From assembly GCF_002113885.1 (NCBI RefSeq), contig NW_018404492.1:6553255-6617254 (forward strand): a DNA stretch of 64,000 bases. Reading direction: 5' to 3'. Under the pieces are notes generated by a model. It did no database searches and was not told the origin of the DNA. It worked only from the letters and a program-made list of their open reading frames with translations. Origin of the DNA: Mizuhopecten yessoensis (taxonomy: Eukaryota). The position numbers and the translations under genes were made by a program. This document shows, piece by piece, positions 28,157 through 56,176 of this stretch (position 1 is the first letter of the stretch; every line of letters starts with the position of its first letter).

Positions 28157-28256
28157 ATGGATACGGAGCGGAGAAGACGTTTACAGACTGATGGTAGGCC
28201 GTCTCGTGTAGCCGCAGCCTTGGTGTTGGGGATCATACTTCTCCCTGTTATACACG
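28157..28256 (+). CDS. FN3/mucin type I membrane protein, exon 1 (signal peptide); whole model 7 exons, 2718 nt = 905 aa
   Basis: GACATGG start; MDTERRRR...VAAALVLGIILLPVIHG has basic n-region and hydrophobic h-region. Donor ACG|GTAAGT, phase 1. Confidence 0.7.
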
Positions 28257-30880
28257 GTAAGTACATCAGCAGCAGGTTATACCAGCGAGTGATATGTCAT
28301 AAATTAGATAATTTTATTTCAACAAAACTAAGAATGCATTCTTTAAAACATGTTTATTCTTTCGGGACACTAATTTAATATCCCTTCTCTATAGAATAAG
28401 TGGACGCCATATTGGGCCCGAACTCCTTATATAATTTTATTTAATCGTTTTTTAATTCATTAATTACAATGTTCTCAATAAAATGACATAATTGAATGAC
28501 TTTGCAGTTCATGTCATTTTCCTGTTTTGCTATGGACATTCATATTGCCAAAAAACTAACTGAATTTGAAAGCAATTTAATGCTTGATTATTGTTTGGGA
28601 CTTCCATGATGTACATATCTATATAATCATTATTTATCCGAATTTTCCCCCTTTTTTCTTAAGATTTGTACTTGATTTAATGACAGTTAAGCTTTAAAGT
28701 GAAATAGATACAGACTAAACGAAGCAACAAGGCCAAAAAATTAAGATATGTAAAACAAAAAATCATAATAAGGTACCATCACGTTTGTCACTCATTTCAA
28801 TGTTTTGTTTATATTATTAAACTTATAAATTTCTATTACCCAATACTGGTTTTAAGTTTCTTTGATGATGTCAATATTCTTCATTTATAATATGCGCTTT
28901 TTTAAGACTTTTTTTTCAAAATCTATCTATTCTTGAATTTTTTAAAGCTCGTAATTTACTAAAGCGATACTTTTGAAATTGTATTATGCACTTTGGTATT
29001 TCGAAGGATAATCACAGATTATTTTTGAAATAATGCAATTTGTTGACATGAAATATAAAAACATCATAACGTCAACATACAAACCCGAAACTTAAAATAG
29101 AAAGGAAAAGACAATAAATGTGATAAATAGTTTTGTTATCCGTTTATTTATGAAAATATATTGTAGAGAGTGCTAATTTAATGTTGAAATAACCAATGCC
29201 AAATCCGTTCGCTTCAGTTTAACAACTAGATAAATAGAAATACCGAATTTCAAATGTTACTACTTTCAGGTGGATTTGATAAGGAATTTTAATTCTTATT
29301 GACGATTATGTTTTGGGCTTTTTATATCGACCTAATCATCTTTAAAAGTTGGTGCAATTTTTCTTTGTACATCTAGTGATTACGAGCAATAATATGCTTC
29401 CTGAATGGTTCACTATTAATAACACATTGCATCATCTTATCATTTTCTTTGGTCATTACATTGTTGAATAATGTGAAGTCAACTGTGTAAGCTACATGGT
29501 CTTAAGCTTTACCACGTAGTCCGAATGATATAAGTCATATGATGCCCCTTATTTTAAAACAAATATGATATCCCTTTTAATATTTTAAAGGCGAAAAATG
29601 ATTTAATCAATTATTTGACAGGACGGGGACGAATGATATTAGTTACAGATTAAGTTAATAGTTTAGTTATGGTGTTGCGTACAATGTAGGTAACATATAT
29701 TTAACATTCAAAATGATTTGACGATACACCATATTGTTCTGCATAATGTTAATTATTCGTGATTTTTTTTTTCAAGAACAAATACAATATCAAATGTAAG
29801 ACTATGTCAAATTTTCTCCCTGTTTAAATCTATTTTACACCCAACATAGTGTTTAATAAATGTTACAAGTGACTATCAATTTAGAACATGTTTTGATAAC
29901 GTCATACTCAAAAACGTTCTTTTCCAAAAAAGGTGATCATCGATACAATTAAACACAACAGAGGCCTAAACGAAATATAATGACGACAAAATTGGGAAAA
30001 TAAATGAGTCCCTGATGAAATCATTCTAATTGATGGCAATATTTTTCAGCAGACTATAGGCATTCCTATATGATCAAACTACCCTCTTCTGTCCGACTGT
30101 TTTGTTCTCATAGGTGTTTGAGTTTATTGAATAGCTTATTAGGACTGATGACAAAAACCACGCCCTCACGTTCTCTGTCAGATATATAGACAATTAAATA
30201 GCAAGAAATGTATCGATCGTATATACCCTATTGAACTTGATTAAAAGAACACTATATATTCGTCTACTTCAGCTGTTTCCTCTATCATAACTTGCCAAAT
30301 GAAAAACAAGGACGTCCTATATCTTAGCTGTACAATAAGCGTGACGATTTCGATTTCTGTTGTGATCTTTCCCTTTCTTGTTAGTAATATCTCTGGTATA
30401 ATATATTATCTTTGTACTTTTCAAGTGTCTCGATGTTATCATGTCTCTGTTCATATTTTGCCCTAGTTTGATCAATTTTGAGAACGAATTGCGTTTTTTT
30501 AACGATTCGATATTCTCTTGAAGTCTGTAGAATATGACACGATCACCACAGATTACGCTACATATTCCCGCACTTTCTTGATGAAAACATGTTCTCTTCT
30601 TCGTACTTCAAAAATGTTAAGAAACATAATTAACACAAGAATATGTGGTACTCAACAGTAAAGATTTAAATCTTCTCTTTATCTGTGCCTGGTGTAATGA
30701 TAAATAGTTTCTCCCTCTAAGTCATGCCGATAGCTATTTATCCATTCACGCTGATATAATACCCATACCCGTCACTCGGCCTGATATCAGGATCTCAGGA
30801 TAATAAAGGATATATAAAATAACATTTTCACTTCGTAACTCCCAATATTCTTTTACTGTAATGTCTTTTTTTCTTGATAG

Positions 30881-31171
30881 GAGCCTGTTTAAGTTTAACC
30901 AGCACTAAAGCAGAACCCTTCAGAACATATGCAAAAATAACATGGAGTATAGCTGGTATAACGCCAGGATGCTCCGTTTTGAACTGGATGGTACACTATG
31001 ACTCGTCAAAACCAGTTCACATTTACCAGAACCGAAATAACACAGGCAGCTATGTGAATCAGTCCTTTGTTCGAGTTTACCCTAACTTCGAGTACAACGT
31101 GTTTGTGGAAGCATTCACCAACCAGGGCGTGGTGCGCTCGCCAATGTTTGTGTACAAGGCCCCGAAAACAA
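30881..31171 (+). CDS. FN3/mucin membrane protein, exon 2 (divergent FN3-like domain)
   Basis: Polypyrimidine plus GATAG acceptor; 291 nt phase 1-1 exon. AKITW ... VYPNFEYNVFVEAFTNQG matches the FN3 W and Y-corner pattern. Donor A|GTGAGT. Confidence 0.8.
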
Positions 31172-31487
31172 GTGAGTAAATTATATTGATAAATATAGAT
31201 GATCAGTTATTATTGTGGACCACGAAAGTTTGTAGAAACACACTCTACACACGAAACTGCGCATTACCAACCATGCTTTGTGCCTTCTTTGTGGTACGCT
31301 TTTAAAAACATCCGTGTGTGTCTAGTGGAAATATTTTCTTAATATCTTTTGAGGAATATTGGGTTTTGAATAAAGGTCCCACCTCCTCATATTTCATCTC
31401 AGTTTTATTTCCACTTTTAGTTAACACGTTAAAGCATAGATACGTTACAAATCACTGACGACTGACTGTTGTTTCTTTGTTCCATAG

Positions 31488-31602
31488 TTCCCGGGAGTGC
31501 TCCGGGTAAGTTACATATGTTGTCAGCCACGCATGACAGTGTCACCTTGGAGTGGGACGCGCTCAGCCTTTTCTACAAGAACGGGAACATCTTAGGTTAC
31601 AA
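31488..31602 (+). CDS. FN3/mucin membrane protein, exon 3 (FN3 N-half)
   Basis: Acceptor TTCCATAG; translates IPGSAPGKLHMLSATHDSVTLEWDALSLFYKNGNILGYK. Donor AA|GTAAGG, phase 2. Not in the ORF track. Confidence 0.88.
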
Positions 31603-31953
31603 GTAAGGTTAACCCTGCTCACTCAATTGCTTTTTTAATGAACTAATATTTTACGTTTGAATCGTATGTTTTGCGAGATTTTTCGTTTTGCTATATTTGC
31701 ATCTTCAAAACTGCGAAATCTAAATGAAAGGATTCCATTGCCATTCTTATACGTTTTATAAGAGTTAATCAGAGAAAAAAAGTGAGAACTTAATTCCGCT
31801 AATTAAAGCGCTTTATGTTATAATTTGTACAATGTGTCGTGTTTAGTTGTGTGACTTCTAAATTTGATTTCATAATTAATCAGATTAAACGTTTACATAG
31901 TGAGCGTACTAGATATTCTTAATGGAAAAGCACATGCTAATTATTGAATTCAG

Positions 31954-32141
31954 ATTGACATACAGATTGCCGGGAAATAGCACAGTAATGTCTACCAGTG
32001 TGTCGGGAGAGAACACCCTGACCGGGGTCATTCGGGGTCTACAGCCCTCAACACACTACCAGATACAGGTGCAGTGTCTTAATGACGTTGGTTTGGGCCG
32101 TCCGAGCAGTCCCTGGCTTGATGTCACCACCAGTGCACTAC
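31954..32141 (+). CDS. FN3/mucin membrane protein, exon 4 (FN3 C-half)
   Basis: Acceptor TTCAG in matching phase; LTYR...IRGLQPSTHYQIQVQCLNDVGLGRPSSPW is canonical FN3. Donor C|GTAAGT. Confidence 0.9.
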
Positions 32142-32448
32142 GTAAGTTCAAGATTAAAAAGTATGTCAATTTCCTTTTTATCTGCCTTTTAAAAACATGT
32201 ATGGTTTGCAGTTATGCAAATACATCCATGCAGTTATCAGTCTGTTGAACACAAATAACAGTAAAAAGAAGATGATGACATTAACAAATAAATATATCGT
32301 GGATTTCAATTACTCAAGACAGTTTAAATTACAGCAATTCATCAGAATAAAAATTCATAATATTCCAAATTAATCTACATTAAACATTGTTTACAATGTC
32401 TTTAAAGCAAAACAGTAGTATTTCTTTTACAATAATATTTAATTTTAG

Positions 32449-32934
32449 CTACTACAACTTCCACTTCAACAACCATTACTACTACGACCACAACGACGAC
32501 CACCATCACCACTCCCACCACCGTCACCACTCCCACCACCGTCACCACTCCCACGACCACCGCCACCACTTCCTCCACCACCCCCACTACCACCACTGCA
32601 TACACTACTACTCCAACAACGACGACAGTTAAAAAGCAAACAATTACTTCGTTAACGACATCAACGCCTACCACAACAAAAACAACACCAAAACAGTTGC
32701 CAATCTCTGTTTCTATCACACCTGCTGCATCGAACCAGAAAACGTCAACACCAACGACTAAGTCAAACCAACCGTCTCCACCAGTCACAGTACACCTAAC
32801 AGCTTCCGGTGCAACATCAGCGCCAAAGTCCACTACCGGTAGATCCGTGACGTCACATGTAACAAAAAAGCTTCCTGCAAACCATTTGACCAACTTGATA
32901 CACACAACGACGCCATCAGCAACGACACGCAAAG
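32449..32934 (+). CDS. FN3/mucin membrane protein, exon 5 (Thr/Pro/Ser-rich mucin-like stalk)
   Basis: Acceptor TTTTAG; open ACN-codon frame PTTTSTSTTITTTT...; 486 nt phase 1-1, ending at GC donor AAG|GCAAGT. Confidence 0.82.
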
Positions 32935-33518
32935 GCAAGTATACACAAACTTTACGTAGAGAAGCATGTTTTATAATGTATCATGTGTCGGATAAATCGT
33001 CACTGATATTATGTATTACGTACTAGCTTACTTCCTTTGTATTACATACATGAGGGTAGAATTAACCGATGTTTACAGTAAACCTGTCAGCGTTTAAGTT
33101 GTGGATATCTCCCGATACTGCAATGGCGTCAGATAAACGATAACACTTTCAAAAGATTTCACCCTCGGCCATACATCGTGGTTGTCCACTGCTTTCTTAC
33201 TTATCTCGTTGACAGGAGTTATTTTGATAAACGTTTACACTGTACCACAGAGACATTTGATTAATCCATCTCTACCTTAAACTTGACCAACGGGAGCTAA
33301 TTTGATGTTGTGGAATTGCTTTAGTTGGCTGGAATAATTCATTGGCGAGGTATTGTGTGCAGGTAAAAGTCGAATAACTCAACTTCTGTCATTCAATTTA
33401 TCGATTAATGAAATCTGCGAAACCGATAAGAACAAGGGGATATAATGACAACTTTCTTGCAAACTTCATTTTATTGGAATTGTTATTTAAGTGTCTCGCC
33501 AAATCTTCATTACAACAG

Positions 33519-33700
33519 ATCCGGGTGACGACAAGATCCTCGGCCTTGACCTATGGATGTTAGTGGCCATCGCTGCCGGCACCTTACTGTTATTATTGCT
33601 GCTTTCGGTGTTGCTTTGTTGCTGCTGTCGGTGCTGTTGCTTCGAGGAGGCAGCTGTTGGGGCTAAGACGAGGGGCGAGGAAAGAGTCTTTGACAAAAGG
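33519..33700 (+). CDS. FN3/mucin membrane protein, exon 6 (TM helix plus juxtamembrane Cys cluster)
   Basis: DPGDDKILGLDLWMLVAIAAGTLLLLLLLSVLLCCCCRCCCF; acceptor AACAG, donor AGG|GTATGA, phase 0. Confidence 0.88.
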
Positions 33701-34001
33701 GTATGAAATTGTATAAGCTTTTCCAGATTGAGTTGACATAAGAAATCATTCTTATTATACTAACACGCATTCAAAGCGTGTACAATGCGTAAAATCTGTC
33801 AATATATCGGTGCTTTTGTCTTTGCTTTTAAATTGTGAAGTTATTTTAATGCTCCTTGTACACTGCATAGCGGAATGGAATTAAGTGGATAAACTAGCAT
33901 GTTTAACATTTCAAACACCCAAATAACAATTTACATTTTAATACTGAATTCAGGATTTCTTGACATTTTCTATATAACATTTGTTTACCATCATATTTTA
34001 G

Positions 34002-35357
34002 AGAATGGACGGCGTCTTTATGGAAAAGGATGCAAGGAGAGACGATATGAGCAGGAAAACACGAACAAGGAGCGTGGTATCTATGGAATCTCTGGACGGA
34101 TACGGAGTTAATGAGGTCAAACCCCGGGCGATGCGACTGGTTAGTGTCGATAGTCACCATTCATTGGACGCAGTCCCGATACTAATACCATCTTCCGCGG
34201 GTAGATACTCTACTAGTCACAACACACCGATGGCCAAGTCCATGGGGACTCAGTATGAACGGATCCATACCACTCCTAGGGCTAGGGCTGCAGGAACCCA
34301 GTACGAGGACGTTACAGAGCGCGTCATATACCCCTCGCCGAAATCTAAGACGTTTGGTACACAGTATGAAAGTATCGCGGAGGAAATATCAACTAAAGAT
34401 GTTGGAACCGTTACAGACAGACGTGGCTCCTTAACATCTTGTGTGTCCCCATTTCCGCCAAACACATGGTTAGCAAAAACGCCGAGAACGCTCAGAGCAG
34501 TTGCACCGATGTATATTAATCCGGATTCGCTGAACCCTATAGTGATGACGACAATGAACGCATCCACTTCCGCTATGAGTAGTCCAGAGCGGAGGTTTAA
34601 ATCGGCAAACGTCCAGACGGATTTGAGTGTATTGAAACCACCAACCTCACTTCCGCAAAGTTATTCTTCTAAATCAGAATCTACCGGGTATCCGTCGTCA
34701 TTCATGTCTAAGAACGATGAAGCTGAAATAGAAATGTTACCTCCGGGTCCCTTAGATGACACAACTAAATCGGTAGGTGCCAGTAGTGTTAGCATTCCGT
34801 CAACAGCAATAGGCGACCGCAAGGTGCCGTTCAGTGATATCGCTAGTTGTCCCACGGCTGTTCCTCTCCGGCCGCAAGACATGCCAAGAACTCGAGATAC
34901 TTCTTTTCTACGGTATCCATCTAAGGCCGCCAGCCATCCCATCACACTCTGGGATATTCCCCTGAAGAGTTATCCAGACAGTATCACATATCCCAGCCAA
35001 GATAGCTCGGGTGAGGTCACTCCTACCCCTATTAATCGTATTGAGTATAACACGATATACGACAACCGTGTCAGCAACACAGATAATACCTACATCCACA
35101 ACTTTCTCGAGGATGCCAAGAGAATGGCGCGCAAACCTAAAGTCTCGCGACCGCCGAGACTTGCGGCGATACCGGCCAATGCTGAATCGCCGGTAGGTTT
35201 GTATGATCCGTTTCCGGAGGAGGGGGGTGCACATAACCTGATAAAACCTGGACTTAGTAAACAAACAACATTTAATAACATCCCAGCAGTGAAAGGTCCA
35301 GAGGTGCGAGCGATTTTATATGAACCACATCGTCTTAAGGATTCTACTGATTGTTGA
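34002..35357 (+). CDS. FN3/mucin membrane protein, exon 7 (451 aa disordered cytoplasmic tail)
   Basis: Acceptor TTTTAG at 34001 is in frame with the 450 aa ORF 34005-35357. Ser/Pro/Thr-rich; GC content above flanks. Confidence 0.88.
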   Translation, partial: RMDGVFMEKDARRDDMSRKTRTRSVVSMESLDGYGVNEVKPRAMRLVSVDSHHSLDAVPILIPSSAGRYSTSHNTPMAKSMGTQYERIHTTPRARAAGTQYEDVTERVIYPSPKSKTFGTQYESIAEEISTKDVGTVTDRRGSLTSCVSPFPPNTWLAKTPRTLRAVAPMYINPDSLNPIVMTTMNASTSAMSSPERRFKSANVQTDLSVLKPPTSLPQSYSSKSESTGYPSSFMSKNDEAEIEMLPPGPLDDTTKSVGASSVSIPSTAIGDRKVPFSDIASCPTAVPLRPQDMPRTRDTSFLRYPSKAASHPITLWDIPLKSYPDSITYPSQDSSGEVTPTPINRIEYNTIYDNRVSNTDNTYIHNFLEDAKRMARKPKVSRPPRLAAIPANAESPVGLYDPFPEEGGAHNLIKPGLSKQTTFNNIPAVKGPEVRAILYEPHRLKDSTDC

Positions 35358-36877
35358 ATATCATTAACCTATCACATTATCATAATTGTGCTCTGACTTA
35401 TGCATAAATCTTGTATACATGATAATTCGACCATGTATAGGGCAGTTCACGTTTTGTTATATTATGACATTATCACATCATTACATCTATATATATATTA
35501 TTGGTATTATATGCCTTTAACTGAACAGTGGATTTATGTTACATGTAGCATGTTAATGTTCAAGTTCTAAGTATAAAATTACATTTATGACCTCAACTTA
35601 CATATTGTATCGTTTTATCAGAGTTGGTCATATACCAGGTTTGATATAATATGATATCTTTATAATTTTAAGACATGGATATCAAATACAGAAAATTATC
35701 ATTGACAGCTACTATTCGCATGTTTCAAACGTGACAATAACACTTTCCTGACAAAAACCTATAAAAACACAGAATAAAGTTTGGAGCATTAAATTATATC
35801 GCATTCTCAAAACGAAAACCGACTGAAATCTTTAAATATCTCACCATGTCTTCTAAGCAAACTATTCAGCAATATTACCAATTGAGGGAAGGACGTAGTT
35901 AAGACCAATATCACTGACTCCCAACCTTACTGTCAATATATGACGTCACAGAAAATTTACATGATAATGGTCAGGATAATTTTAAGTGACGAAAATGGAT
36001 TGAATAGATTATTAAATTATTTCTTTTTGAATTCCATAAATATTCAACCGGTAATTTATTTTTGTAATGTCATGGTTGTGAACTGTATATAGTATTCAAA
36101 TGGTAAATATAACATATTCTGTTATTACATAACTCACGTGTTGTGTCAAAGACCATACATTAGTATTCTAATGTTATCGAGTGGTTTCTTTTAATACTGA
36201 ATATTTAATACAATTACACTAATGAGAGTTTGATTGGAAGAAATGTCCAAACATAGAATACGATGTCGTAAACAAAATGATTTAAAGATATTACCTAGTA
36301 GACTTTTTAATGGTGATTTAAAAGATTTCGAAGATTTTCCGATGTCTGAAAAAAATCACAATGATGCCATACTAAATGTCTGCGTAAACATATAAAAAGG
36401 ATATATTCATTTCTTTTCATATTTCATATGAGATATTTGAAAGAAATTCTGCCAAATATTTATAAATATATAAATGTCTTTATTTTTTTTCAATAAAAAG
36501 GGAGAATAATTTAGAAATTAAAGTTTCATGTTAAAGTCCGTCCATGCATGATCAATTGGGTGTTTTTTTCCTGTATATCTTTGTGATAGTCCATGTTTTT
36601 GTTATCATAATATACGATAGTTCATCAATTTTCAATAGAATATTTTTGTCAGTTTAGGTATGTGATAGGTTGTCCATGTTTGATGGTTGCTTTTATATTA
36701 ATTTGCCTGTATATGATAAGTCATCATTATTCAATAGGATGCCTTTGTTTTATGTGTGTGCGATAACCTGTCCATGTACAATGGACTGTATTTATGGGTT
36801 AGTTTGTCCATGTTCAACGGTTGCTTCTATATTTAAATGTTTATTATAATCCATCATTATTCAATATGGTGACCTTT

Positions 36878-37168
36878 TATGTATATGTGATGATACGTCC
36901 ATGTTCAGTAGTTGTTTTTATGTATATGTGATGATATGTCCATGTTCAGTGGTTGTTTTTATGTATATGTGATGATACGTCCATGTTCAGTGGCTGTTTT
37001 TATGTATATGTGATGATATGTCCATCTTCAGTGGTTGTTTTTATGTATATGTGATGATATGTCCATGTTCAGTGGGTTTTTTCATGTATATGTGATGATA
37101 TGTCCATGTTCAGTGGTTGTTTTTATGTATATGTGATGATTAGTCCATGTTTAGTGGTTGTTTTTATG
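36878..37168 (+). repeat. 41 bp minisatellite, ~7 good copies with degenerate flanks (~36540-37290)
   Basis: ATGTATATGTGATGATATGTCCATGTTCAGTGGTTGTTTTT in tandem. Confidence 0.92.
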
Positions 37169-37910
37169 TTTAAATGTATATGTAAACACGTAATTATTCA
37201 ACAGGGTGCCTTTGATTTATGTATATGTGATAATGTTAAAGAACCCGTATTACTTTATTGGTATGTGATAGTCCGTCCATATTAATTGAATGTTTTGGTT
37301 TATTCTTGTATGTAACATTTCGTTTATAATTCATAGTTTCCTTTATATATATGTACATGTACATATATGTTAGTTTGTTTACGTTTAAAATTATATTTTC
37401 GTTTTAGAGACAGTAGTGACCTCACTGACTTTCATAACATCAATATTCTCATCATATGTATATATATTTATTGACAATTTTACATTCATTGAATTATGTA
37501 ATAATACATGGTCTTTTTTTTAATTATTAACACGAATTAAAACATTAATATCAAATCGTGAATTTATATTGCATGAATATATATCATTATCATCTCGATA
37601 TTGTTCTTGTCCAATATTATTTGACAATCTTTGCTGTCTATCGTTGTATAGTCCCATAAGTAATATGTCAATTCCGTCATATTTTTCTTAGAATTTCCAT
37701 TCCGAAATATTATTGTATCATATTTATAGAATAAAAGCAAGGTAATTATATTATCCTCAATCACATGTAAATATCCGAGTTTAGTTTGTGTACAATCATT
37801 GTTTTAACGTTGTCAACATTCTGTGTTTAGTTTGTATTGAATTAAAACTACAAGGATAACACAATATTTTGCTTTTCCAAAATGTAGAGTTTTATTTAAG
37901 CAATGAAAAA

Positions 37911-38043
37911 TTTAGCAAATGTTGTTATGGTCCTATAACACTCATCGCTATTGATAAAAAAACTTAATAAAGGTGTTAGGGTTTTATGTAAGTTTGTCAG
38001 CAATACAAAGGTGTGTTATAGGACCATAGCAACATTTGCTAAA
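37911..38043. repeat. Inverted repeat / MITE-like hairpin
   Basis: TTTAGCAAATGTTGTTATGGTCCTATAACAC versus GTGTTATAGGACCATAGCAACATTTGCTAAA (31 bp, 1 mismatch). A partial third arm lies at 38161. Confidence 0.8.
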
Positions 38044-39050: not shown

Positions 39051-39149
39051 ATGGAGGATATAACTTGACGCGGGACAATCAGACTGATTCTTGTTGTTAC
39101 ATTCAGTATAAAATTGGACACATTTCCTAACGAAGTACAGGGATTACAG
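39051..39149 (+). pseudogene. Candidate disrupted signal-peptide exon upstream of the 41056 gene
   Basis: Strong context AACAACATGG; reads MEDIT*RGTIRLILVVTFSIKLDTFPNEVQGLQ with TGA at 39066-39068. Perfect donor CAG|GTAAGT at 39150. Confidence 0.4.
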
Positions 39150-40479: not shown

Positions 40480-40980
40480 ATTCTATATCCCGTAAGTAAT
40501 GTGCTATTGGAAATTATGAATATTTTATATCCTATATACAGTATAATGTTGAACCTGTCAATATTCTATATCCCGTGTACAGTATACTGATGGAAATGAT
40601 CAATATTCTAATATCCTGTATACAATGCACTGATTGAAATGTTCAATATTCTATATCATGTATACAGTACTAGTACACTTATGGAAAGGGTCAATATTCT
40701 ATTTCCTGTATACAATTTACTGCTGGACATATCCAATATTCTATATCATGTATACTTAACTGATGAAAATGGTCAATATTCTAATATCCTGTATACACTA
40801 TACTGATGAGCATGATCAATATTCTATATCCTGTATCCAGTTTTCTGATGGAGATGGTTAATATTCTAATATCCTCTTCACAGTTTACTGATGGAAACGT
40901 TCCATGTTCAATTTTATATACAGCATCCTAAAATAATAATTATGATATATATTATATATATACTGATGGCAATGATGAAT
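40480..40980 (+). repeat. Degenerate ~43-45 bp minisatellite, ~10 copies
   Basis: Recurring CAATATTCTATATCCTGTATACAGTATACTGATGGAAA. Confidence 0.85.
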
Positions 40981-41055
40981 ATAGTCTAGAGCTACATACG
41001 GTTAAACCTTTAGTCAACCTTAAAGCTGAACGTAATAATACATTTCAGATGAGCC

Positions 41056-41301
41056 ATGTTCGGATCCGTTCCCCTGTATTTCGTCATTGCAATAATAGCT
41101 GGGATAGGTGTTGTCGGCATCTTGGTAGGTTTCTGCTCATGTTGGATGTGTAAGCAGTGTTACTTGTGCTACGAAAAGAAGAACGAAGCTCGACAGCGAC
41201 GACGTAGAAAACGAAAACGTCGTCAACAACAACAGTATGATGAGTATGACGATGACGACGAGTATGATGAATTCGATGACAACATCTATTATTCCAAACA
41301 G
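41056..41301 (+). CDS. Uncharacterised single-pass membrane protein, TM exon; model 2 coding exons, 4380 nt = 1459 aa
   Basis: GCCATG start; MFGSVPLYFVIAIIAGIGVVGILVGF TM, then CSCWMCKQCYLC, polybasic RRRRKRKRR and an acidic Tyr run. Donor CAG|GTAGAT, phase 0. Confidence 0.8.
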
Positions 41302-41496
41302 GTAGATATGAGCTTCTTCTGTTCAAATATATCAAATGTCAACGTTAAATATTCATAGCAAAATATATATTTAGAAACAATTATTGTGCATTCTATTTCG
41401 GAGAAAATACAAAAAGCTTAATCCATGCCATTTTTTCTTATTTTGGGGAAAAGTTTTTCGGAGATACAATTTTGAAAACACTTCTTATGTTTTCAG

Positions 41497-44400
41497 AACG
41501 CCAACGACAATCCAAGACATCAGCGACCTAGGCTCGAATCACATGCCGTACCAAGAAATCCCACTAAAGGTGGTGTAAGTGTATTCCCTTCACGTAATAA
41601 TGATAGACATCACATTGAAGATGAACGCGGACCGACCAGAAGTAAAACTAGACAAGCTGGTGACGACAGAAACACCTCAGTTGCTGGGAGATCTACATGC
41701 GCTAGACGCCACTCTCCTAAAACCATTGATAACAACGAAGACGAGAAAAAAGGATGTGCTTTGTTCTGCACCTATTGTTGCTGTTGTTGCGACTCATTGG
41801 ATGATGCATACTATTACGACTCCGATGATGAAGAAAGCGAGGACGATGAAAATCCAAAAGAAAGGGGCACATCTGCGAAAAAAGGCCATGCAGTTGCAGC
41901 TGTATCTCAACACACGTCTAGTGGTGACAAAAATATTGACAAAAATATATCAAACGATAAAAATAGGGAAACATCAAAAGAAAAACCGAAAACACAACAA
42001 GGTCCAACAAATGCTAAAGAACCCGAAAGTAAAGAAGTGAAAGCAAAGAAGAACAAAGAAAAAAACCCCAAAGAACCAAAAGATAAAGAAATGAAAGAAA
42101 AGAATAAAAAAGATAAGAGAAACAAAGGAAATGCATGTTGTGCAGGTTGTATAATTCCATCGGACAGCGATGATATCGAAGATTCAGATTATGAGGAGGA
42201 ATGGGATTATGATGATGACGATGAAGGAATCAAAAGATCTCCAAATAGTTGTGACAAAAATATTGACAAAAATATATCAAACGATAAAAATAGGGAAACA
42301 TCAAAAGAAAAACCGAAAACACAACAAGGTCCAACAAATGCTAAAGAACCCGAAAGTAAAGAAGTGAAAGCAAAAAAGAACAAAGAAAAAAAAACCAAAG
42401 CACCAAAAGATAAAGAAATGAAAGAAAAGAATAAAAAAGATAAGAGAAACAAAGGAAAAGCATGTTGTGCAGGTTGTATAATTCCATCGGACAGCGATGA
42501 TATCGAAGATTCAGATTATGAGGAGGAATGGGATTATGATGATGACGATGATGGAATCAGAAGATCTCCAAATAGTTGTGACAAAAATATTGACAAAAAT
42601 ATATCAAACGATAACAATAGGGAAACATCAAATGAAGAACCGAACACACAACCAGATCCAACAAATGCTAAAGAACCCGAAAGTAAAGAAGTGAAAGCAA
42701 AGAAGAACAAAGAAAAGAAAAAAAAAGAATCAAAAGATAAAGAAATGAAAGAAAAGAATAAAGAAGAAAAGAGAAACAAAGGAAATGCATGTTGTGCAGG
42801 TTGTATAATTCAATCGGACAGCGATGATATCGAAGATTCAGATTATGAGGAGGAATGGGATTATGATGATGACGATGATGAAATCAGAAGATCTCCAAAT
42901 AATTTAAACAATAAAAACGGAATAATGCCAACGACTGCCGGTAATCAAAAGAGGGGAAAATCCGTAATAGGCCGTCCTAAAAGTAACAAAAACTTCATAG
43001 ACGAAAGGCAGAAAAAAAATAATGAAATACCCACTGCAAAAGACACACGTAGCAATCAAATGGTGTGCTGTTGCTTTGGTTATGAAAGTGACGACGAGTA
43101 TTTCGACGATTGTGATGATGAGTATAGTGAGGAGGAAAACTATGACTCTGATTCACTCGAAAGCCCAGAAAATAAAGGAGCAACAGCAATTATTGGAACC
43201 AATACTGCTGCGAGAACGGAAGGGAAAGGCGGCCGAAAAACTGCAAAAACACCCCGCCCGCGATCGGGGAAACGGAGTACATCGAAGAAATCAAAAGACA
43301 ACAAAAAGTGCAAAGCTTGTTTTCTGTGCAGGATAAAGTGTATTGGATGTGCAGCGTGTTGCAAAAAGAAACAAATGGGCGAAGAAGAAAGCAATTACGA
43401 TTCTGACGACGATGACCTCTATGACAGTGATGATGATGAAGATGCAGCAGATGATTACACGGTGATTGCGGCCGGAGGAGCCGCCGCATCGGTGACAGGG
43501 GTGCATGCTTCTAAATCAGGAAAAGCTAGAGTGTACAGATCGAAACGCAAAGCAAAACCCAAGAATATTCCAAATTATATGAAAAAGAAAAGAATCTGCT
43601 GCTTTGTTATCAAACGTTCTGAAAAAAACTGTAAACAAAATACCAAAAAAGCGAGTAAAATATCTAAAAAGAGAAAAGTAAAAGAAAGTACAGCAAATCA
43701 AAACAAAACAGACACAATAAACATGCCAAATGAGAACATCGACGTTGCTGACAAGAAAACAACAAAGCCACCGATACTGGTTGCATCTGCATTAGAAGCG
43801 ACGCCGGAAGAATATAACAATGTGCGTAATGATGAAAAGATAAACAATGCACTTGACTCGTCTACGACAAATAACCGAATATTCAATGAAAACAGAACTA
43901 ATACTTATGCTCAATCAGGCGCCGTATCTGGAACACAAACAATCCAAAATCAAGGAACGCGAACAAACCAAAATGTCACAGAGAAAAATCCACTGACGAA
44001 AACCAAACCCGTGGAGTCGTATATGGACGCAAAATACGGCGCAACTAAACCCAATGTTACTTTTGCTGAAGATGTTAACCGGGGCCAGAGTTATCTAAAC
44101 CAAAGCAACATTGGCAAAAATTATGATGGTTCGAGCAACAGTACAAAAGCAAAAACTCCAGAACCTGTTCTTTTGACCAAGAATACAGCAGAGAAAAGGA
44201 ATGCGGCAGTGTCTGCCTTGTTTGCATCAAGCAATACTGCAGTTGAAACAAGTAAAGTGACAGGTGTAAATAGATCTGCAAATGAAATTACAAAAAATGA
44301 AGACCAACGGTCAAATGCTAATAATCGGCGTTCTGACGATGCGACTAGTGATGTTCCTTCGGAAACGAAGAAAACACAAGAGGAAAGGAAGACAGAACGA

Positions 44401-45630
44401 AAGGAAAAGAAGAAAGAAAAAACAAAAGCGGTGATGACTTTGTTGTCAGGAAGCCTTTTCCCCAAAAGTAGCGCGAGTTCAATAACATCAATAACGAACC
44501 AGACAACTAGAAATGGTGGCCAATCATTGAACCATCAGACTACATGGACAGCTGGTGCTCTAACGGCCGCTGTACCCGTGTCGTTATACAAAGATCGAAA
44601 CACCAGCAACAATAATATAACTGATGGACCTGCTGAGCCCGAACGGCACAATTCAAATAACCCAAATGAATCTCTACATAACACTGTGCCGAACGGAGGA
44701 GCGATATCCAGCACTAATGGGTATAACCCTATAAATATTGACGACAATCAATCAAATAACCATCATTTAAGTGGCTCCGAAAATAATGGTATGCAAACGA
44801 CTGCACTATCTATGCTTGATTCGCAGCACACCGACCGGAAACCTATCTCAAATTCAAATCAAAACCAATCTGGATACAATCAACCAATCAGAAATGATCA
44901 TTCTTACTATTCTGTTGGTGATAATGCGGTGACTGCAATGGCTGCATCGACAGCAGTCAATCAAACAAATGGAATAAACACGGGCCAGAATAGTAGTCTA
45001 ACAGCGGCAAATCAAACCAAACCGCCCACAATCCCGGTAAAGAGCGATGGAATCCCTCCCCAAGGAGTTGGCATGAAAGCAAGAGGTCGTAAAAACTGGA
45101 AGGCAGTTGCTTCTTTGGCAGTAGCGAAGGAATTTACGATGCCCAACATGAAGGCAGATTGGGATGTAACGGGAGGTAACTCGAACAAAGGGGTCGGACA
45201 AGATAAAAGAGAACCTACATCTAAGTTTGCAGCAAGTGTCTCTGCCATGATGGCGAAACAACACTTCATTAAGGCAAGAGAGCCTCGTAAAAACGAGCCT
45301 GCATGGGACTTATTGGAAGGAAAACCAAAAGACATGCAAACAGAAGAAATTATTCCTAAAACAACTATGCGTAAGAGCAGGAGCTTGAATACGCTTTTTG
45401 AGAATGAAACGGACATATTTTCCGTTGATCTACCAACAAAACGACGAAAAAAACGCCAAGAAGATTTTGATTGGGATGCAATCTCTTCAATGGCAAGTGA
45501 ACGAGGAGCAAATCGCCCACCTCGCTTCAACCAGCCTAGTATATTGATGGACGATAGCAATCCCATTACAAACACGAGGTTCCAAGGAGGGCCTTCACGA
45601 CGGACTTCGCTCACAAATATACGTCATTGA
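41497..45630 (+). CDS. Uncharacterised single-pass membrane protein, 4.1 kb terminal exon (low-complexity cytoplasmic region)
   Basis: Acceptor TGTTTTCAG at 41496; the frame is open from 41497 (NANDNPRHQ...) and continuous with the 1289 aa ORF 41761-45630. Confidence 0.88.
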   Translation, partial: NANDNPRHQRPRLESHAVPRNPTKGGVSVFPSRNNDRHHIEDERGPTRSKTRQAGDDRNTSVAGRSTCARRHSPKTIDNNEDEKKGCALFCTYCCCCCDSLDDAYYYDSDDEESEDDENPKERGTSAKKGHAVAAVSQHTSSGDKNIDKNISNDKNRETSKEKPKTQQGPTNAKEPESKEVKAKKNKEKNPKEPKDKEMKEKNKKDKRNKGNACCAGCIIPSDSDDIEDSDYEEEWDYDDDDEGIKRSPNSCDKNIDKNISNDKNRETSKEKPKTQQGPTNAKEPESKEVKAKKNKEKKTKAPKDKEMKEKNKKDKRNKGKACCAGCIIPSDSDDIEDSDYEEEWDYDDDDDGIRRSPNSCDKNIDKNISNDNNRETSNEEPNTQPDPTNAKEPESKEVKAKKNKEKKKKESKDKEMKEKNKEEKRNKGNACCAGCIIQSDSDDIEDSDYEEEWDYDDDDDEIRRSPNNLNNKNGIMPTTAGNQKRGKSVIGRPKSNKNFIDERQKKNNEIPTAKDTRSNQMVCCCFGYESDDEYFDDCDDEYSEEENYDSDSLESPENKGATAIIGTNTAARTEGKGGRKTAKTPRPRSGKRSTSKKSKDNKKCKACFLCRIKCIGCAACCKKKQMGEEESNYDSDDDDLYDSDDDEDAADDYTVIAAGGAAASVTGVHASKSGKARVYRSKRKAKPKNIPNYMKKKRICCFVIKRSEKNCKQNTKKASKISKKRKVKESTANQNKTDTINMPNENIDVADKKTTKPPILVASALEATPEEYNNVRNDEKINNALDSSTTNNRIFNENRTNTYAQSGAVSGTQTIQNQGTRTNQNVTEKNPLTKTKPVESYMDAKYGATKPNVTFAEDVNRGQSYLNQSNIGKNYDGSSNSTKAKTPEPVLLTKNTAEKRNAAVSALFASSNTAVETSKVTGVNRSANEITKNEDQRSNANNRRSDDATSDVPSETKKTQEERKTERKEKKKEKTKAVMTLLSGSLFPKSSASSITSITNQTTRNGGQSLNHQTTWTAGALTAAVPVSLYKDRNTSNNNITDGPAEPERHNSNNPNESLHNTVPNGGAISSTNGYNPINIDDNQSNNHHLSGSENNGMQTTALSMLDSQHTDRKPISNSNQNQSGYNQPIRNDHSYYSVGDNAVTAMAASTAVNQTNGINTGQNSSLTAANQTKPPTIPVKSDGIPPQGVGMKARGRKNWKAVASLAVAKEFTMPNMKADWDVTGGNSNKGVGQDKREPTSKFAASVSAMMAKQHFIKAREPRKNEPAWDLLEGKPKDMQTEEIIPKTTMRKSRSLNTLFENETDIFSVDLPTKRRKKRQEDFDWDAISSMASERGANRPPRFNQPSILMDDSNPITNTRFQGGPSRRTSLTNIRH
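41924..42900 (+). repeat. Three in-frame 327 bp (109 aa) coding tandem repeats
   Basis: GTGACAAAAATATTGAC at 41924, 42251 and 42578; units are near-identical. Confidence 0.95.
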
Positions 45631-46826
45631 AAGTGATATCACCAAATTTCAGCAATGACAGAGGCTTCACCAAACTTAGTTCTTCCGGAACTGACGTGGA
45701 CGTCACCAACATTCAACATTGAGATGGGAGTTATAAACATTTGTCATTCTTTTATAATTGGTGACACGAGTATCCGGAACTGTGGACGACGAATATCCTT
45801 TTTTTTTAATAGACATTATATTGTAAATACCTTGGATAAATCCACTCTGGTAGCATTCCATCGATGTATGTAGGCAATTGCGTACAAAAGGTAACACATT
45901 ACACAGTTAACGTAGGTGTTATGCATGTGTATGGCATGATTTATTAAGAATCTAAACATAATTGATCATCAACTCAACTTGTCAGTTGACTTCAAACAAT
46001 CGTTGTATGCATAATGCACTTATCATACTACTTGTGAAATATTAAGATTTTCTTAAAGATTTCACAGCAAGAAGCAATACAAACGATGTGTAAGCATTAA
46101 TCTACAGTGTTAAATAGTGTTGGGTATCAGAAAGCAATAATCAGTAGACTATCACTAGGCTACATGGTTGAAAATATATCGAAAAAACCTCGTAGTGTTC
46201 ACCTCTCACCTGCGATAAATTTGTTGATAACATCACAGACATTCATTGTGTAAATATATGGTGCTTTATACAATCTGGAAATTAAAAACCGAAGAGCGCT
46301 CGCAATGTACACATAGTAATAAATCACGTAACCATTTACAACTGTGATAAATAAACGAACTTTGTTTTAACTTCTGACGATGTCAAACGATGTTTTTTAG
46401 CTAGGATAAAGAATTTATTTATTTAATGATATGAAAATGCATTTGATAGGGCAATATATTGTTATTTTTTAATTGTGCGGCCATGTCTATCACAAATTGG
46501 GTGCAACCTATATCGATTTGTTACTCATATCTACCCATACCAGGAAGTAAGGAACATTCGCCTTATCTATACCTGAGACAAAGGTACATAGTATTGTGTC
46601 GAGTATTACTCACTGGATCGTTTTATATGAATAAGTGGGCTCCTAGGGTTCTTTGATGTTTGTTGTAATGCAAATATTCAAACTAGCATTTAATTAACAA
46701 TATAAAGGTTCATTTGTACAAGACACTTCAGTCGAACAAAAAAAAGCGTCATTTATTGAGGAAATAAGTAACTGGCATTAAGAAAACAAAACGACAGATT
46801 TCATTGATTTTAAGAAGAAATCGAGG

Positions 46827-47354
46827 ATGGCTGCCGTCATGACAAGACATGAAGTTGGCGTTTGTGATGTGGGATCCGCCGTGCGCGTGCCGAATAACGC
46901 GATAGCAAAGCTGATGTTTTATACGAAATGTATTTGCGACCTCATCAACCTGTATGATATGGACGAGATTTTCAAAAGACTGACTGATTTCGAGAGATAT
47001 TACCTTCTAACGGAGCTAGAAATAGATAAACTTATCATCTTCTGCATGAACTATTCACCGGAGGTTTTGGCGGACAAGTGTTTGTTTCACAACGAAGATA
47101 TTTGTGGCGATTCCATTAACAAGTTTATTGAATTGTCCTCGGTTGATCGACAGCTGATCGTGTCAGACGACATCATGCTTGGTGGAACGCAAACACGTGT
47201 CAAACGAATCATGTGTTACAAAATGGAATGGCTGATGGAGTACTATCTGGCACCGATGTTGGTAATGAAGAGAAGACACGATAAGATTATGAAAATCATT
47301 GCAATGCACAATAGGGAGGTGGCAAATGCTGACTGCTGCTGCATTATATTGTAA
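46827..47354 (+). CDS. Uncharacterised intronless 175 aa protein with C-terminal CaaX (CCCIIL), paralog A
   Basis: Intact ORF with AGGATGG start and TATAAA at 46701; ~72% identical to the 50968 ORF over the first 150 aa (hand count, 42 mismatches). Confidence 0.9.
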   Translation: MAAVMTRHEVGVCDVGSAVRVPNNAIAKLMFYTKCICDLINLYDMDEIFKRLTDFERYYLLTELEIDKLIIFCMNYSPEVLADKCLFHNEDICGDSINKFIELSSVDRQLIVSDDIMLGGTQTRVKRIMCYKMEWLMEYYLAPMLVMKRRHDKIMKIIAMHNREVANADCCCIIL

Positions 47355-48802
47355 GAAGAAAACACACAGTGCTCATATTCAAGTGGCATTCCCTAACAAA
47401 TTATTCGCATTATGAAGTTTCGCCAATATTTGTTTTTCTTGAAAAATGTTACATCAATTATCATAATGTTACAGTGATTAATATATCATTTTGAATAATC
47501 CTTGTTGGGAGACGTCATGACAACACGGTGATTTGTCGCTATATATCAACAGAGAATGATACAGCAAAGTTGTATACAAATGTATATAAAGATTTATCGT
47601 TATTATTAGTTTCAAGTGTTCAGCAAAATAATGTTAACATTTAGACGTTATATCACGTAGTTGGAATACATGTGCATTTTAAAATCAACTCAAGGAAAAA
47701 CGCCGAGATATCCATGTATGGAACTGCTATGAGCCAGATTACTTAAGCATTTTTTAATTTGGTAAATGCAACCTAGTCCATGTCAATTGATAGAAGCATT
47801 ATTGGCTGTAAACCGACTAACAAATAAATAAAACAGACTGCCTTTCTTCAGGGATGATATGACAGTAAATAAAATCATCACGTTAACCTTTACTTGACGA
47901 GAAGTCTTTTTTATGAGGTATCCTTATTACTGCAATTTGACTCGCTCATCTATGTTCATTTATATCAAATAAAATCGTACAGCTATACTTTAATCAAGTC
48001 AAAAACATTTCCTTGTTGGAGTTCCGACCCTTGTTATTTTTATTTATTTAAAATTGAATGCCGTTGAACCAATTATGGATAGAAATTTCATTTAATATCC
48101 ATTTAGGCAATTTTGAAAAGTAGTCTTAACTTTGAGGGAAAATATAGCAATTGCTAAACATCATTGGCTGACAAATATTTTAACTTTTGAAAAGATCTGT
48201 TTTATATGAATTACGTGAAGTATATCAATATAAATCATCAATACAAATCATCAATACAAATGGTCTCGCATTTTGTCACACAAAATATGTATTAATTTTA
48301 TACGAGGTCATAAATGCGTAGCAATACGTTGATCGTACATGCATTAAACAGTGTAGTATTCATGACAATTTTTTTTTAACCATTTTCCTTTTTGATTTTT
48401 TGACAGATTCCAAGCTCTCCGCACATTTTCCAGCAAGTTATATTGTAGTATTAATTTAATTATCTATGTACAGTTTTGTTCACATAATTACCTTACATAA
48501 TGTATATTTTGGGCCATTTTACTGGCTTGTATATCAAAAACATTAAACCACGACCTTGTCCTCACTAATGCAGAAATTGTGATCATTTCTCTTTCTCCAA
48601 TTCCTTTATTGTAAATTTTGTGACAGTATTTTGAATACCCTAGTGAAACCTGCTCAATTAAAAACAAAATCAACCCTTCTGTTAGATGAGGCTCGTAGAT
48701 TCCTGGCAAAACAAACATACTAGAGAATAGTAGTTGTAAAAGATGCACATTGTGCATAGCTTCAAAGTCTCTTTACAAGCTTCAGCTGAGAGAACTTCCC
48801 TT

Positions 48803-48860
48803 TATTTCAGCGGTAGAGCGTTCAACCAGAAAGTCTGGGGTCGCAGTTTTACTCCCCAGC
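48803..48860 (+). mobile_element. tRNA-derived (SINE-head-like) remnant; related copies at ~49105-49160 and ~56030-56088
   Basis: A-box-like TCAGCGGTAGAGC and decayed B-box; the 56030 copy keeps GGGTTCGTTCCCC. No intact cloverleaf. Confidence 0.5.
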
Positions 48861-49244
48861 GAACGTACATATTATTTCCACTGCAACTTTTCTATAACAA
48901 AATTGATGCCGTTGACCTATCTAACTCCAGATAGTGCAAAGCCCTTTGGTGTGAAGTAAATTAACCTGGCTTTCAGTAGTCTTTGAGGGTGAAGACTAGA
49001 TAAAATGGAGAGTGCTATATAAGGATGTGCCTTGTACAATGTTTAGTGTGAAAGTCATCTCACAAGTCCAAATCATTAGCTTCGGCTCGAGGAAAGTTTC
49101 CTTTATCTCAGCGGTAGAGCATCCGACTAGAAAGTCTGGGAGTCTGGAATTCCCCAGCGAACAAATATCCTTTACGCTACTTCGTTTCCATTACATAAGG
49201 ATGAAACATATTCAGTTCACATGTAGGATTGCTCAAACCTTCCA

Positions 49245-49330
49245 TTAACTCTTTGATCCTTTTCTCATAAGTTAGTATATTGTTATTTGTACAAAAGAAT
49301 TTGTATCACTGCTGAACAAATCCTGATTTC
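49245..49330 (-). pseudogene. Decayed duplicate of NR2C2AP last exon
   Basis: Reverse strand reads FSSDTNSFVQITIY*LMRKGSKS* versus FTNSTDFFGRITIYQLMILGSKS* in the real exon; it has a frameshift and an internal stop. Confidence 0.8.
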
Positions 49331-50967
49331 TTTAAAGCAGGGAGCTTACTCGTGAACGAATCATCCACACATTAAAAATATCTAGTGTAATCCTACAACA
49401 AAAATCGACATGAAAAGAGGGATATAAGACTTAAGAGGCACACCTTCCAATTTCAATTAGCTGAAGTAAAAGGATCAAAGATTAGAAAAACAAGAATTGT
49501 ATATTTTACATGACGTAAATTGATCGACAACACTCTTCAGTCATAGCAATCTGTGATTTAAAAAGACATTACGCCATTGCGATTATTTTTGATTTTTTTT
49601 TTATCACAATCAGTTGGTAGTATTTAATTATCCTAAAATATACTTTCCAAGCGAATACTTTAAATATCAATTGGAAATACATTTCAATAAGAACCCCCTC
49701 ATATGGACCTGATAGTGATCTGATATGGTCACGTGCACGCCAAAATAGAAACCTTGGGTCGATATGTCATATATCAGCGAACTTGAGATAAAGGATTAGC
49801 CAATTGGAATCAAGGAAAGTCGGACTATTTGTAATAAGATATTTTAGTGTTGATTTCATCATATTGATCAATGATTAGTGACATAATACTCAGACCTTTG
49901 GGTAGCTATCAACACATTTTGAATAGTCATTCTTTCTGTAGACGTCTTGGGTAACCCTCTCTGGCAGCATTCTTCCAATAACATTGCATCAAAATATGTC
50001 ATCAACCGAGTGACATCAGAGAAATTAACCCATAGTATCATCAAGACTGATGACTTTTTACACACTTAACGCTTATATGGTTATGTGCATGGTGTGATTG
50101 ATGTTTAACAAGCTACTAATTTAACAGAACATCTACCCAACTTGTTGATTGACTTGCAAACCACGTGGTATTCATCAAGATTTTCTAAACAATTAATAGT
50201 AAGACGACATAAAAATTGGCCTCCAGTTTGTAAACACCACATACCATGTTAAAGACCGATGTGTACATGATATCGGTAAGCAATAATCAATGGGCTATCA
50301 CTGGACTTTAACACACCACGTGGTCCTAAATACATCTATATATCAAACACAGTGTTCACCTGTCACCTGCGGTACACTTGTGTGTGATAAAAACACAGAC
50401 GTTCATTGTGTATATACTAGGAGCTGTAAATACTAAATATATTTATGTAACCAATTATATTTGTGATTTAAAAAACACACACGAACATTGTAATAACTTA
50501 ATATAACGACGTCACAAACTTTTTACATTTAACAAGTAGTGGGTTATTTAATATGAAATCACAACGCATCGGATACACTGTAGGGGAGTATAATGCTACT
50601 CTAAAATTTTGTGTAGTATTGAGTCTCTGTAATGGACGGGTGCAACGTGTATCCACCTGTTACCCATATTTGCCTATAGCAGGAAGTAAATGGATTTAAA
50701 AATATGCAGATAGAAGGAACATAATCAACAATACACGTACCTGATATAGAGGTATATATTATTTCGTCGAGCTTTACATACAGGATTTTGCACATTAAGT
50801 GGGCAGTATCAACTGGAATTCTTTGTGGTAATGCTGATCAGCAAACAAAGTTTTAATCATCAATATATAGGGTTCAAACCCGAATTGGTGTCATTCAATA
50901 AGGACACAAGTTACTGACATTACGAAAACGAAACGACCGATTTCAAAGACATCAGAAGAAATCAAAG

Positions 50968-51507
50968 ATGGCTGCCGTGATGACAAGGCGCGAAATGGGC
51001 GTTCGTGATGTGGGATGCTCCGTGAGCGTCCCGGAAGACGTCAAAGCAAAACTGATGTTCTACTTGAAATGTATTTGTGACCTCATCAGTCTCGATGACC
51101 GAGACGAGGATATGAAGAGACTGACAGATTTCGAGAGATATTACGTTCTAACGGAACCAGAAGTAGATCAGCTGACCGTCGTCTGCATTCTCATTTCACC
51201 AGACCTTTTGGCGGATAAATGTATATTTCACAGTGAGGATATGTGTGGTGATTCCAGGAACAAGTTTTTCGAATTGTCCTCAATTGATCAACAGCTGATC
51301 GTGTCAAACGACATTCTTATTGGCGGAATGCAAACACGTGTCAAAAGAATAATGTGTTATAAAATGGAATGGCTGATGGAATACTATCTGATACCAATAT
51401 TGGTACTGAAGAGAAGGCTCGAACTGAAAATGGCATTGGCACAAGAAATCGTGGCAATGCATGAAAGGGAGGAGGCAGATGCTGGATGCTGCTGCACTAT
51501 ATTGTAG
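50968..51507 (+). CDS. Uncharacterised intronless 179 aa protein with C-terminal CaaX (CCCTIL), paralog B
   Basis: Intact ORF with AAGATGG start and TATA-like TATATAG at 50864; shares AKLMFY.KCICDLI, RLTDFERYY and QTRVKRIMCYKMEWLMEYYL with paralog A. Confidence 0.9.
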   Translation: MAAVMTRREMGVRDVGCSVSVPEDVKAKLMFYLKCICDLISLDDRDEDMKRLTDFERYYVLTEPEVDQLTVVCILISPDLLADKCIFHSEDMCGDSRNKFFELSSIDQQLIVSNDILIGGMQTRVKRIMCYKMEWLMEYYLIPILVLKRRLELKMALAQEIVAMHEREEADAGCCCTIL

Positions 51508-52418: not shown

Positions 52419-52425
52419 ACTTTAA

Positions 52426-56159: not shown

Positions 56160-56176
56160 ACCTATTCAGTCTTCTG

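Follow-up and report, generated by a model that had tools for sequence, protein, structure and literature searches.

Do neighbouring genes that share a conspicuous sequence feature also share a function? The question is raised by a locus of the scallop Mizuhopecten yessoensis, in which four + strand genes, here called G1 to G4, occupy 28157-51507 (first ATG to last stop) between FEM1 and NR2C2AP. The window analysed is a stretch of 64,000 nucleotides (contig NW_018404492.1, positions 6,553,255 to 6,617,254), to which all positions without a prefix refer. A preliminary description had pointed to four co-oriented Cys-cluster genes at this place that fit no named family and had regarded them as a receptor, a scaffold and effectors of one membrane domain, possibly with an immune role. 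The genes themselves were recovered as described: none of the Pfam families matched G2, G3/G4 or the tail of G1, and we found no paper naming these genes. They represent three unrelated families, G3 and G4 being one duplication. These are probably three independent lipid-anchored families that are adjacent through conserved scallop gene order. Each family would be held at the cytoplasmic face of a membrane via lipid-modified cysteines, and G1 to G4 would be neighbours because scallops kept this chromosome stretch in order. Splice sites are predictions throughout, except for G2, where they follow the NCBI model P0176.

The order G1, G2, small gene and NR2C2AP is identical in Mizuhopecten, Pecten maximus and Ylistrum balloti, at synonymous divergences (dS) of 0.7-1.2. 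Unlinked genes in related species, which the preliminary description had named as evidence against its proposal, were not seen, as the block is collinear in both relatives. However, the same degree of collinearity in Pecten and Ylistrum extends to unrelated neighbours, namely NR2C2AP on the - strand and a PF02594 gene. This indicates that the linkage of G1-G4 is regional background synteny and not specific to the three families; linkage beyond this background was not found in the two species. The flanking genes of the block are as follows.

6618-14361, + strand: FEM1-type open reading frames with ankyrin and TPR repeats, the upstream flank of G1-G4
56177-58113, - strand: exons of NR2C2AP, collinear with the 138-amino-acid F5_F8_type_C genes of Pecten and Ylistrum

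Elsewhere, the family of the small genes G3 and G4 occurs without the other two. Neither a paralogue of G1 or G2 nor a poly-Cys gene within 10 kb was found at six other small-family loci in the genome, in which G1 and G2 are both single-copy. G1- or G2-like neighbours are also absent from a coral-like contig, where the small-family gene lies among its own tandem paralogues, from the rotifer Rotaria, where it stands beside Raptor, LMBR1 and Hint-domain genes and a retrotransposon, and from the unionid Potamilus, where it lies alone. Only the small gene was duplicated at the scallop locus, with no co-duplication of G1 or G2. The long members of the small family are tandem domain repeats, gene-model mergers or fusions to ZZ or SAP domains, and among them there is no fusion to G1-like or G2-like sequence. 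Furthermore, both the age and the spread of the small family far exceed those of G1 and G2. With equally collinear flanks, a small family that occurs alone and neither fusion nor co-duplication, the proposed receptor, scaffold and effector module gained no specific support, and nothing pointed to immunity.

The two small proteins with a CCC-CaaL ending were confirmed, together with the duplication that produced them.

46827-47354, + strand: G3, intronless, 175 amino acids, ending in CCCIIL; the younger, faster-evolving duplicate (omega 0.26-0.38)
50968-51507, + strand: G4, intronless, 179 amino acids, ending in CCCTIL; ortholog of the lone Pecten/Ylistrum gene (omega 0.15-0.21)
46499-49326, + strand: copy A of a segmental duplication, which gave G3; collinear with 50638-56259 (nine collinear pieces, 66-96% blastn identity)

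G3 and G4 are 68% identical; for G4, identity reaches 74% with Pecten P0002 and 66% with Ylistrum P0004. Each of these two species has only one ortholog, at the matching position. As the dS between G3 and G4 (0.49) is lower than that between Mizuhopecten and Pecten (~0.7), the duplication took place after that split. Part of the NR2C2AP 3' end is duplicated as well (49037-49326 compared to 55964-56259, 71% identity over 300 bp); the tandem duplication thus copied this end and left a dead piece of NR2C2AP between G3 and G4. Both proteins end in the arrangement of the geranylgeranyltransferase I class, with Cys at position -4, aliphatic-type residues at -3 and -2 and a final Leu (CIIL in G3, CTIL in G4), and the orthologs of Pecten and Ylistrum end in CTIL and CVIL. 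Geranylgeranylation is accordingly a predicted property of G3 and G4.

G3 and G4 appear to be lineage-specific tandem duplicates within a large, unnamed and intronless animal family of ~180 amino acids. An exhaustive profile search detected 995 family representatives (50% identity clusters) at E<=1e-3 and 110 at E<=1e-30. Named members come from the sponges Amphimedon and Sycon, the coral Acropora, the bivalves Magallana, Pinctada and Potamilus and the rotifer Rotaria, and no vertebrate name occurred in the small sample of ~40 family proteins looked up. Among the best 158 matches, 96 have a CaaX ending, with L (62), S (10), Q (8) or M (6) as the last residue, and 55 of these 96 carry one to four extra Cys just upstream. 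A hydrophobic C-terminal transmembrane tail, often after a Cys run, replaces CaaX in 11 of the 158, while the rest are mostly truncated-looking. Judging from these tails, a C-terminal membrane anchor is a conserved property of the small family, and the type of anchor appears to have been swapped repeatedly. In some relatives, which lack the lipid tail, the small domain is fused to a ZZ zinc finger, alone or together with a SAP domain. The relatives cited for ZZ/SAP fusions or for transmembrane tail anchors are P0109 and P0139 (Logan contigs), P0050, P0082-84, P0090, P0092 and P0136.

The genome of M. yessoensis contains at least nine copies of the small family at seven loci, one of them a pseudogene. 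All intact paralogues end in CaaX, and the second signal is either Cys or polybasic (SCTVM, KKKDCVIL, SSCCTIL, KKDSCAIM, GTCCTIL). One copy (L011, G000:C5240:1437031-1437561, - strand), 17 kb from an intact paralogue, is probably a young pseudogene: its sequence, which keeps the CTVM tail, is intact except for an in-frame stop (...LINK*FFHDD...). Two further copies (L007 and L008, on G000:C4840 and C3248) are identical over their first 30 residues, differ at one of the last 25 and share the ending KKKDCVIL. Haplotigs or a very recent duplication could account for the pair. The coral-like ENA contig (L004, 1069-14322) has at least three small-family genes in tandem (tblastn matches at 1069, 4949 and 10001), and on its opposite strand two more called genes of similar size, whose family membership is unconfirmed.

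An AlphaFold2 model of G4 based on an alignment of 122 sequences reached a pLDDT of 89.5 and a pTM of 0.83; it superseded an earlier run with nine sequences (pLDDT 53.8). The N-terminal half of the model is helical; there is also a small beta-sheet, and a C-terminal helix of 40 residues leads to the lipid tail. Nearly invariant in the family are M30, Y32, P78, N98, F100, M129 and P143. These residues are structural and not catalytic, and the small domain may therefore be read as a membrane-proximal binding module. Attempts to name the family gave no result. G3 and G4 have no Pfam match at E<=1, and no match recurred in the 122 family members. A PDB sequence profile search reached a best E of 0.077, Foldseek with the G4 model a best E of 1.2 against PDB and no match against BFVD, a wide VIA-align search found no structural match, and in the ESM Atlas, searched by shape and by features, the template modelling score did not exceed 0.36. 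A literature search by accession numbers also provided no name. The identity of G3/G4 as Ras-superfamily GTPases was considered and rejected, as there was no Pfam match to a G domain or P-loop and no structural match.

The organisation of the small proteins would thus comprise a globular helix/sheet domain, a 40-residue helical stalk and a CaaX box (X = L, predicted geranylgeranyl) with additional Cys of the palmitoylation type. Ras and Rho tails are anchored to membranes by two signals, the second being a Cys or a polybasic run. The tail of RhoB, -CINCCKVL, is a self-sufficient prenyl and palmitoyl membrane-sorting signal (PMC4160200). Dual-lipidated tails of the Rho/Ras type (RhoB, RalA/B, H-Ras) and of paralemmin resemble those of the G3/G4 family in combining CaaX, in the family mostly with X = L, with upstream Cys or polybasic residues (PMC4160200). 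In contrast to the Rho/Ras GTPases, the globular part of G3/G4 is not a GTPase and consists of the helix/sheet domain on its helical stalk, and some family members carry a transmembrane tail anchor in place of a lipid tail.

G2 corresponds to the adaptor-like protein with about eight Cys clusters of the preliminary description.

41056-41301, + strand: G2 exon 1, with a 4-residue N-terminus, the transmembrane segment VPLYFVIAIIAGIGVVGILVGF, the juxtamembrane CSCWMCKQCYLCY and polybasic and acidic runs; 71% identity to Pecten L001:4273-4515
41497-45630, + strand: G2 exon 2, 1377 codons, a disordered tail of polybasic, Cys-cluster and acidic/Tyr modules; the C-terminal ~220 amino acids are better conserved
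41919-42901, + strand: tandem repeat within G2, three units of 327 bp with 96% matches; each unit consists of a K-rich stretch, ACCAGCII and an acidic run

The NCBI model P0176 (1459 amino acids) matches the window at 100% identity, and the two exons add up to its length (82 + 1377 = 1459 codons). After four N-terminal residues, the protein has a 22-residue hydrophobic helix, CSCWMCKQCYLCY and an Arg/Lys run. CSCWMCKQCYLCY stands immediately after the membrane segment and is kept in Pecten and Ylistrum, as expected of an S-acylation site. Because of the positive-inside rule, the 1400-residue tail is likely to be cytoplasmic. The eight clusters are FCSCWMCKQCYLCY next to the membrane, CALFCTYCCCCC, three copies of ACCAGCII, VCCCFGY, CKACFLCRIKCIGCAACC and ICCFVIK, and each of the seven beyond the juxtamembrane one is flanked by polybasic and acidic/Tyr stretches. 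Alignment of the three species shows Cys to be better conserved than any other residue type of G2 (65% three-way identity compared to 31% overall), and most of the non-conserved Cys fall in two extra repeat copies found only in Mizuhopecten. The 327-bp unit is single-copy in Pecten and Ylistrum, which indicates that the number of Cys clusters is evolving by duplication of this unit.

The orthologs in Pecten and Ylistrum share the start Met of G2, and comparison with both revealed no conserved coding block in the 5.7 kb upstream of it. Therefore, the lack of an ectodomain is an ancestral pectinid feature and not the mark of a broken allele. G2 would be a signal-anchored protein without ectodomain, whose disordered tail is probably pinned to the membrane repeatedly via S-acylated Cys clusters; the position of the clusters between polybasic and acidic/Tyr stretches suggests a membrane-hugging scaffold. 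The last 22 residues of the Pecten ortholog (L001:8043-8108) match the window in another frame than the rest of the exon, which reflects either a C-terminal frameshift or an assembly error. The name of P0176, 'DDB_G0283697-like', is a compositional artefact, and a FAM176 match on the transmembrane exon (E 2.6e-4, 21.3 bits) was discarded as it lies below the cut-off of 31.5 bits.

The adaptors LAT, PAG1/Cbp, LIME1 and LAT2 are similar to G2 in having almost no ectodomain, one transmembrane segment, juxtamembrane Cys and a long disordered tail with Tyr. Compared to them, G2 is large (1459 amino acids), has seven further Cys clusters over ~800 residues and carries its tyrosines in acidic runs (YYYDSDDEE, DSDYEEEWDYDDDD) and not in YxN or YxxL/I SH2 motifs. 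Homology to these adaptors was not detected: G2 has no Pfam match, and P0176 was the sole database match in a search hampered by low-complexity words. Cys strings of the DNAJC5 and SNAP-25 type also resemble those of G2, with four to seven Cys within 5-18 residues and hydrophobic or basic flanks, although G2 has neither a J nor a SNARE domain and combines several separate strings with a transmembrane anchor.

The receptor-like protein with juxtamembrane poly-Cys is G1, for which a phase-compatible exon chain with good splice signals encodes a signal peptide, an FN3-like and an FN3 domain, a Thr-rich stalk, a transmembrane segment, CCCCRCCC and a tail of 450 amino acids.

28157-28256, + strand: exon 1, start codon and signal-peptide-like segment MDTERRRRLQTDGRPSRVAAALVLGIILLPVIHG; donor ACG|GTAAGT; 66% match to Ylistrum L021:1808-1894
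30881-31171, + strand: FN3-like exon with phase 1-1 boundaries, assigned by pattern only; 81% identity to Ylistrum L021:3617-3913
~31488-31602 and ~31954-32141, + strand: second FN3 domain on two exons (Pfam fn3), conserved in L020 and L021
32449-33023 (3' boundary provisional), + strand: Thr/Pro/Ser-rich, mucin-like stalk exon, from splice scan and scallop comparison
33519-33700, + strand: transmembrane exon, LWMLVAIAAGTLLLLLLLSVLL followed by CCCCRCCC; 84-85% identity in Pecten and Ylistrum
34002-35357, + strand: cytoplasmic tail exon, 450 amino acids; 78-80% identity to Pecten P0177 and Ylistrum P0178

All of these exons have collinear matches in Ylistrum balloti and most have them in Pecten maximus. 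The second half of the second FN3 domain (frame 31922-32245) matches Pfam fn3 (PF00041) with 28.8 bits, above the cut-off of 25 (E 1.4e-6), and the first half (frame 31466-31603) with an E of 0.004; the exon at 30881-31171 has no Pfam match. The frame of the transmembrane exon (33491-33703) reads ...LLLLLLLSVLLCCCCRCCCFEE, and CCCCRCCC, immediately after the membrane segment and retained in Pecten and Ylistrum, again occupies the position of an S-acylation site. In the NCBI models of the orthologs, P0177 (498 amino acids, Pecten) and P0178 (496 amino acids, Ylistrum), the start Met lies within the transmembrane helix. Since the exon is conserved as coding upstream of this Met, at 84-85% identity from exon residue 4, both models are truncated and the receptor-like reading of G1 stands. 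The models (L020:10001-11869 and L021:10001-12563) omit conserved upstream ectodomain exons, and the Pecten annotation assigns part of the ectodomain to a gene of its own, of 203 amino acids (L020:8468-9344). The 4-5 kb upstream of the G2 orthologs (L001, L002) gave no match to the tail, which is present at the P0177 and P0178 loci.

With an omega of 0.11-0.14 at a dS of ~0.9 between scallop genera, constraint on the G1 tail is far tighter than is usual for a disordered tail; purifying selection acts on the Cys clusters and the tails alike. Conserved features are three GTQYE[RDS/C][IV] motifs (GTQYERI, GTQYEDV, GTQYESI), NRIEYNTIYDNRVSNTDNTYIHNF and the ending RAILYEPH..STDC, the C-terminal sequence being ...RAILYEPHRLKDSTDC. 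A distant ENA protein, P0180, retains NRIEYNTIYDNRVSNTDNTYIHNF and the same ending. No Pfam family or named homolog was found for the tail. G1 would be a single-pass type I protein of receptor-like or adhesion-like design, with two FN3-type domains and a stalk of the O-glycosylated type in front of the membrane segment and CCCCRCCC. Its conserved tail, rich in Tyr motifs, probably recruits partners of the SH2/PTB type, and the T-x-Y-x-x-[IV] motifs may be SH2-docking sites of the immunoreceptor tyrosine-based switch motif (ITSM) type. FN3 single-pass receptors with tails containing ITSM or the related inhibitory motifs (ITIM) share with G1 the FN3 modules, one transmembrane segment and three T-x-Y-x-x-[IV] motifs, while G1 differs from them by its mucin-type stalk, an eight-residue Cys run after the membrane segment and a tail that lacks a Pfam family or named homolog. 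As for G2 and the small proteins, it is from features of this kind that we infer lipid modification, topology and partner binding.

Two further blocks near G1 are conserved. One (33078-33211), between the stalk and transmembrane exons, matches Pecten L020:9434-9567 and may be an extra small exon or an intronic element. The other (27200-27780) lies upstream of the start and matches Ylistrum L021:877-1455 in several reading frames, so that it is the DNA itself that is conserved. Candidates for this block are a promoter, a 5' untranslated exon or a conserved non-coding element. Between G1 and G2 lie AT-rich tandem arrays at 36875-37169 (41 bp, seven units) and 40508-40897 (~42/85 bp, nine units), where the scallop comparison revealed no conserved coding block.

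How firmly does gene order alone account for this neighbourhood? The alternative is that G1 as receptor, G2 as palmitoylated scaffold and G3/G4 as lipid-anchored effectors act in one S-acylation-dependent membrane domain and that their linkage was selected. Four close genes on one strand, all with conserved Cys runs at a membrane anchor, speak for it, as does an order kept in three pectinid genera at the divergences given above. Several observations also count against the explanation by inherited gene order, the first two of them in favour of the shared membrane domain. Poly-Cys anchor genes are unusually dense here, with four in 23 kb, whereas 140 kb of control sequence from this genome contained none: of five CCC-containing open frames of at least 50 amino acids in the window, four are G1-G4, while CCC occurs in 4/824 control frames, all short and not gene-like, and gene exons bearing CCC are rare in the control DNA. 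The copy at the G3/G4 locus is among the few in the genome with CCC as second signal, most paralogues elsewhere having one or two Cys or a polybasic stretch. Finally, the restriction of G1 and G2 to scallops is apparent and not proven. Homologs of G2 were found only in scallops, in a search that was capped at 8000 candidates, was swamped by low-complexity words and returned P0176 only, missing even the Pecten ortholog. The search with the 450-amino-acid tail of G1 covered proteins up to 787 amino acids, and the exons were searched singly; as full-length orthologs of greater length fall outside this range, the confinement of G1 is not established either. Nevertheless, collinearity is no weaker for the unrelated flanking genes, the small family is common without G1- or G2-type neighbours (six other loci, the coral-like contig, rotifer and unionid), the duplication hit the small gene alone, and the fusions found link the small domain with ZZ and SAP instead of G1 or G2. 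In animals, moreover, unrelated genes rarely form functional clusters. On balance, a selected cluster of receptor, scaffold and effectors seems unlikely.

The Cys runs themselves could be understood differently. The clusters of G2, and perhaps of G1, could be metal sites of the metallothionein or zinc-knuckle type, which would make G2 a membrane-tethered metal buffer or redox sensor. Scallops are known accumulators of heavy metals, CxxC spacing recurs in CKACFLCRIKCIGCAACC and CSCWMCKQCYLCY, and the prominence of Cys among the conserved residues of G2 would fit this idea. However, the clusters are embedded in F, I, L and V after a polybasic run, which is typical of S-acylated segments and not of metallothioneins, G2 has no Pfam metal-binding domain, and its first cluster abuts the transmembrane segment, the classical position for acylation. 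We therefore consider metal binding very improbable. The likeness of the Cys runs might also be a compositional coincidence between families that are adjacent by chance, the runs having no shared meaning. Only three independent families are involved, as G3 and G4 are one duplication, and the locus was picked after the fact among hundreds of windows in the genome. This view is largely compatible with the favoured reading of three lipid-anchored families in inherited order and differs solely in denying the Cys runs a function, which is contradicted by their conservation; it appears unlikely.

There is thus little probability that an FN3-mucin receptor, an S-acylated disordered transmembrane scaffold and lipidated small proteins of a new fold form one scallop signalling unit. 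A true receptor, scaffold and effector cluster would be notable if it existed, given the rarity of functional clusters of unrelated genes in animals. It is more likely that the small proteins constitute a family of lipid-anchored adaptors that is new and pan-animal, has a fold not seen before and swaps repeatedly between CaaX plus Cys, CaaX plus polybasic and transmembrane anchors. G2 represents an unusual design, a transmembrane-anchored disordered chain with eight conserved Cys clusters, and offers a possible model of how a disordered scaffold is stapled by lipids at multiple points. The more durable result, however, is the small family, which has no Pfam model or known fold and a C-terminal anchor that follows the two-signal logic of Ras and Rho, and which may represent a new and testable class of peripheral membrane proteins.

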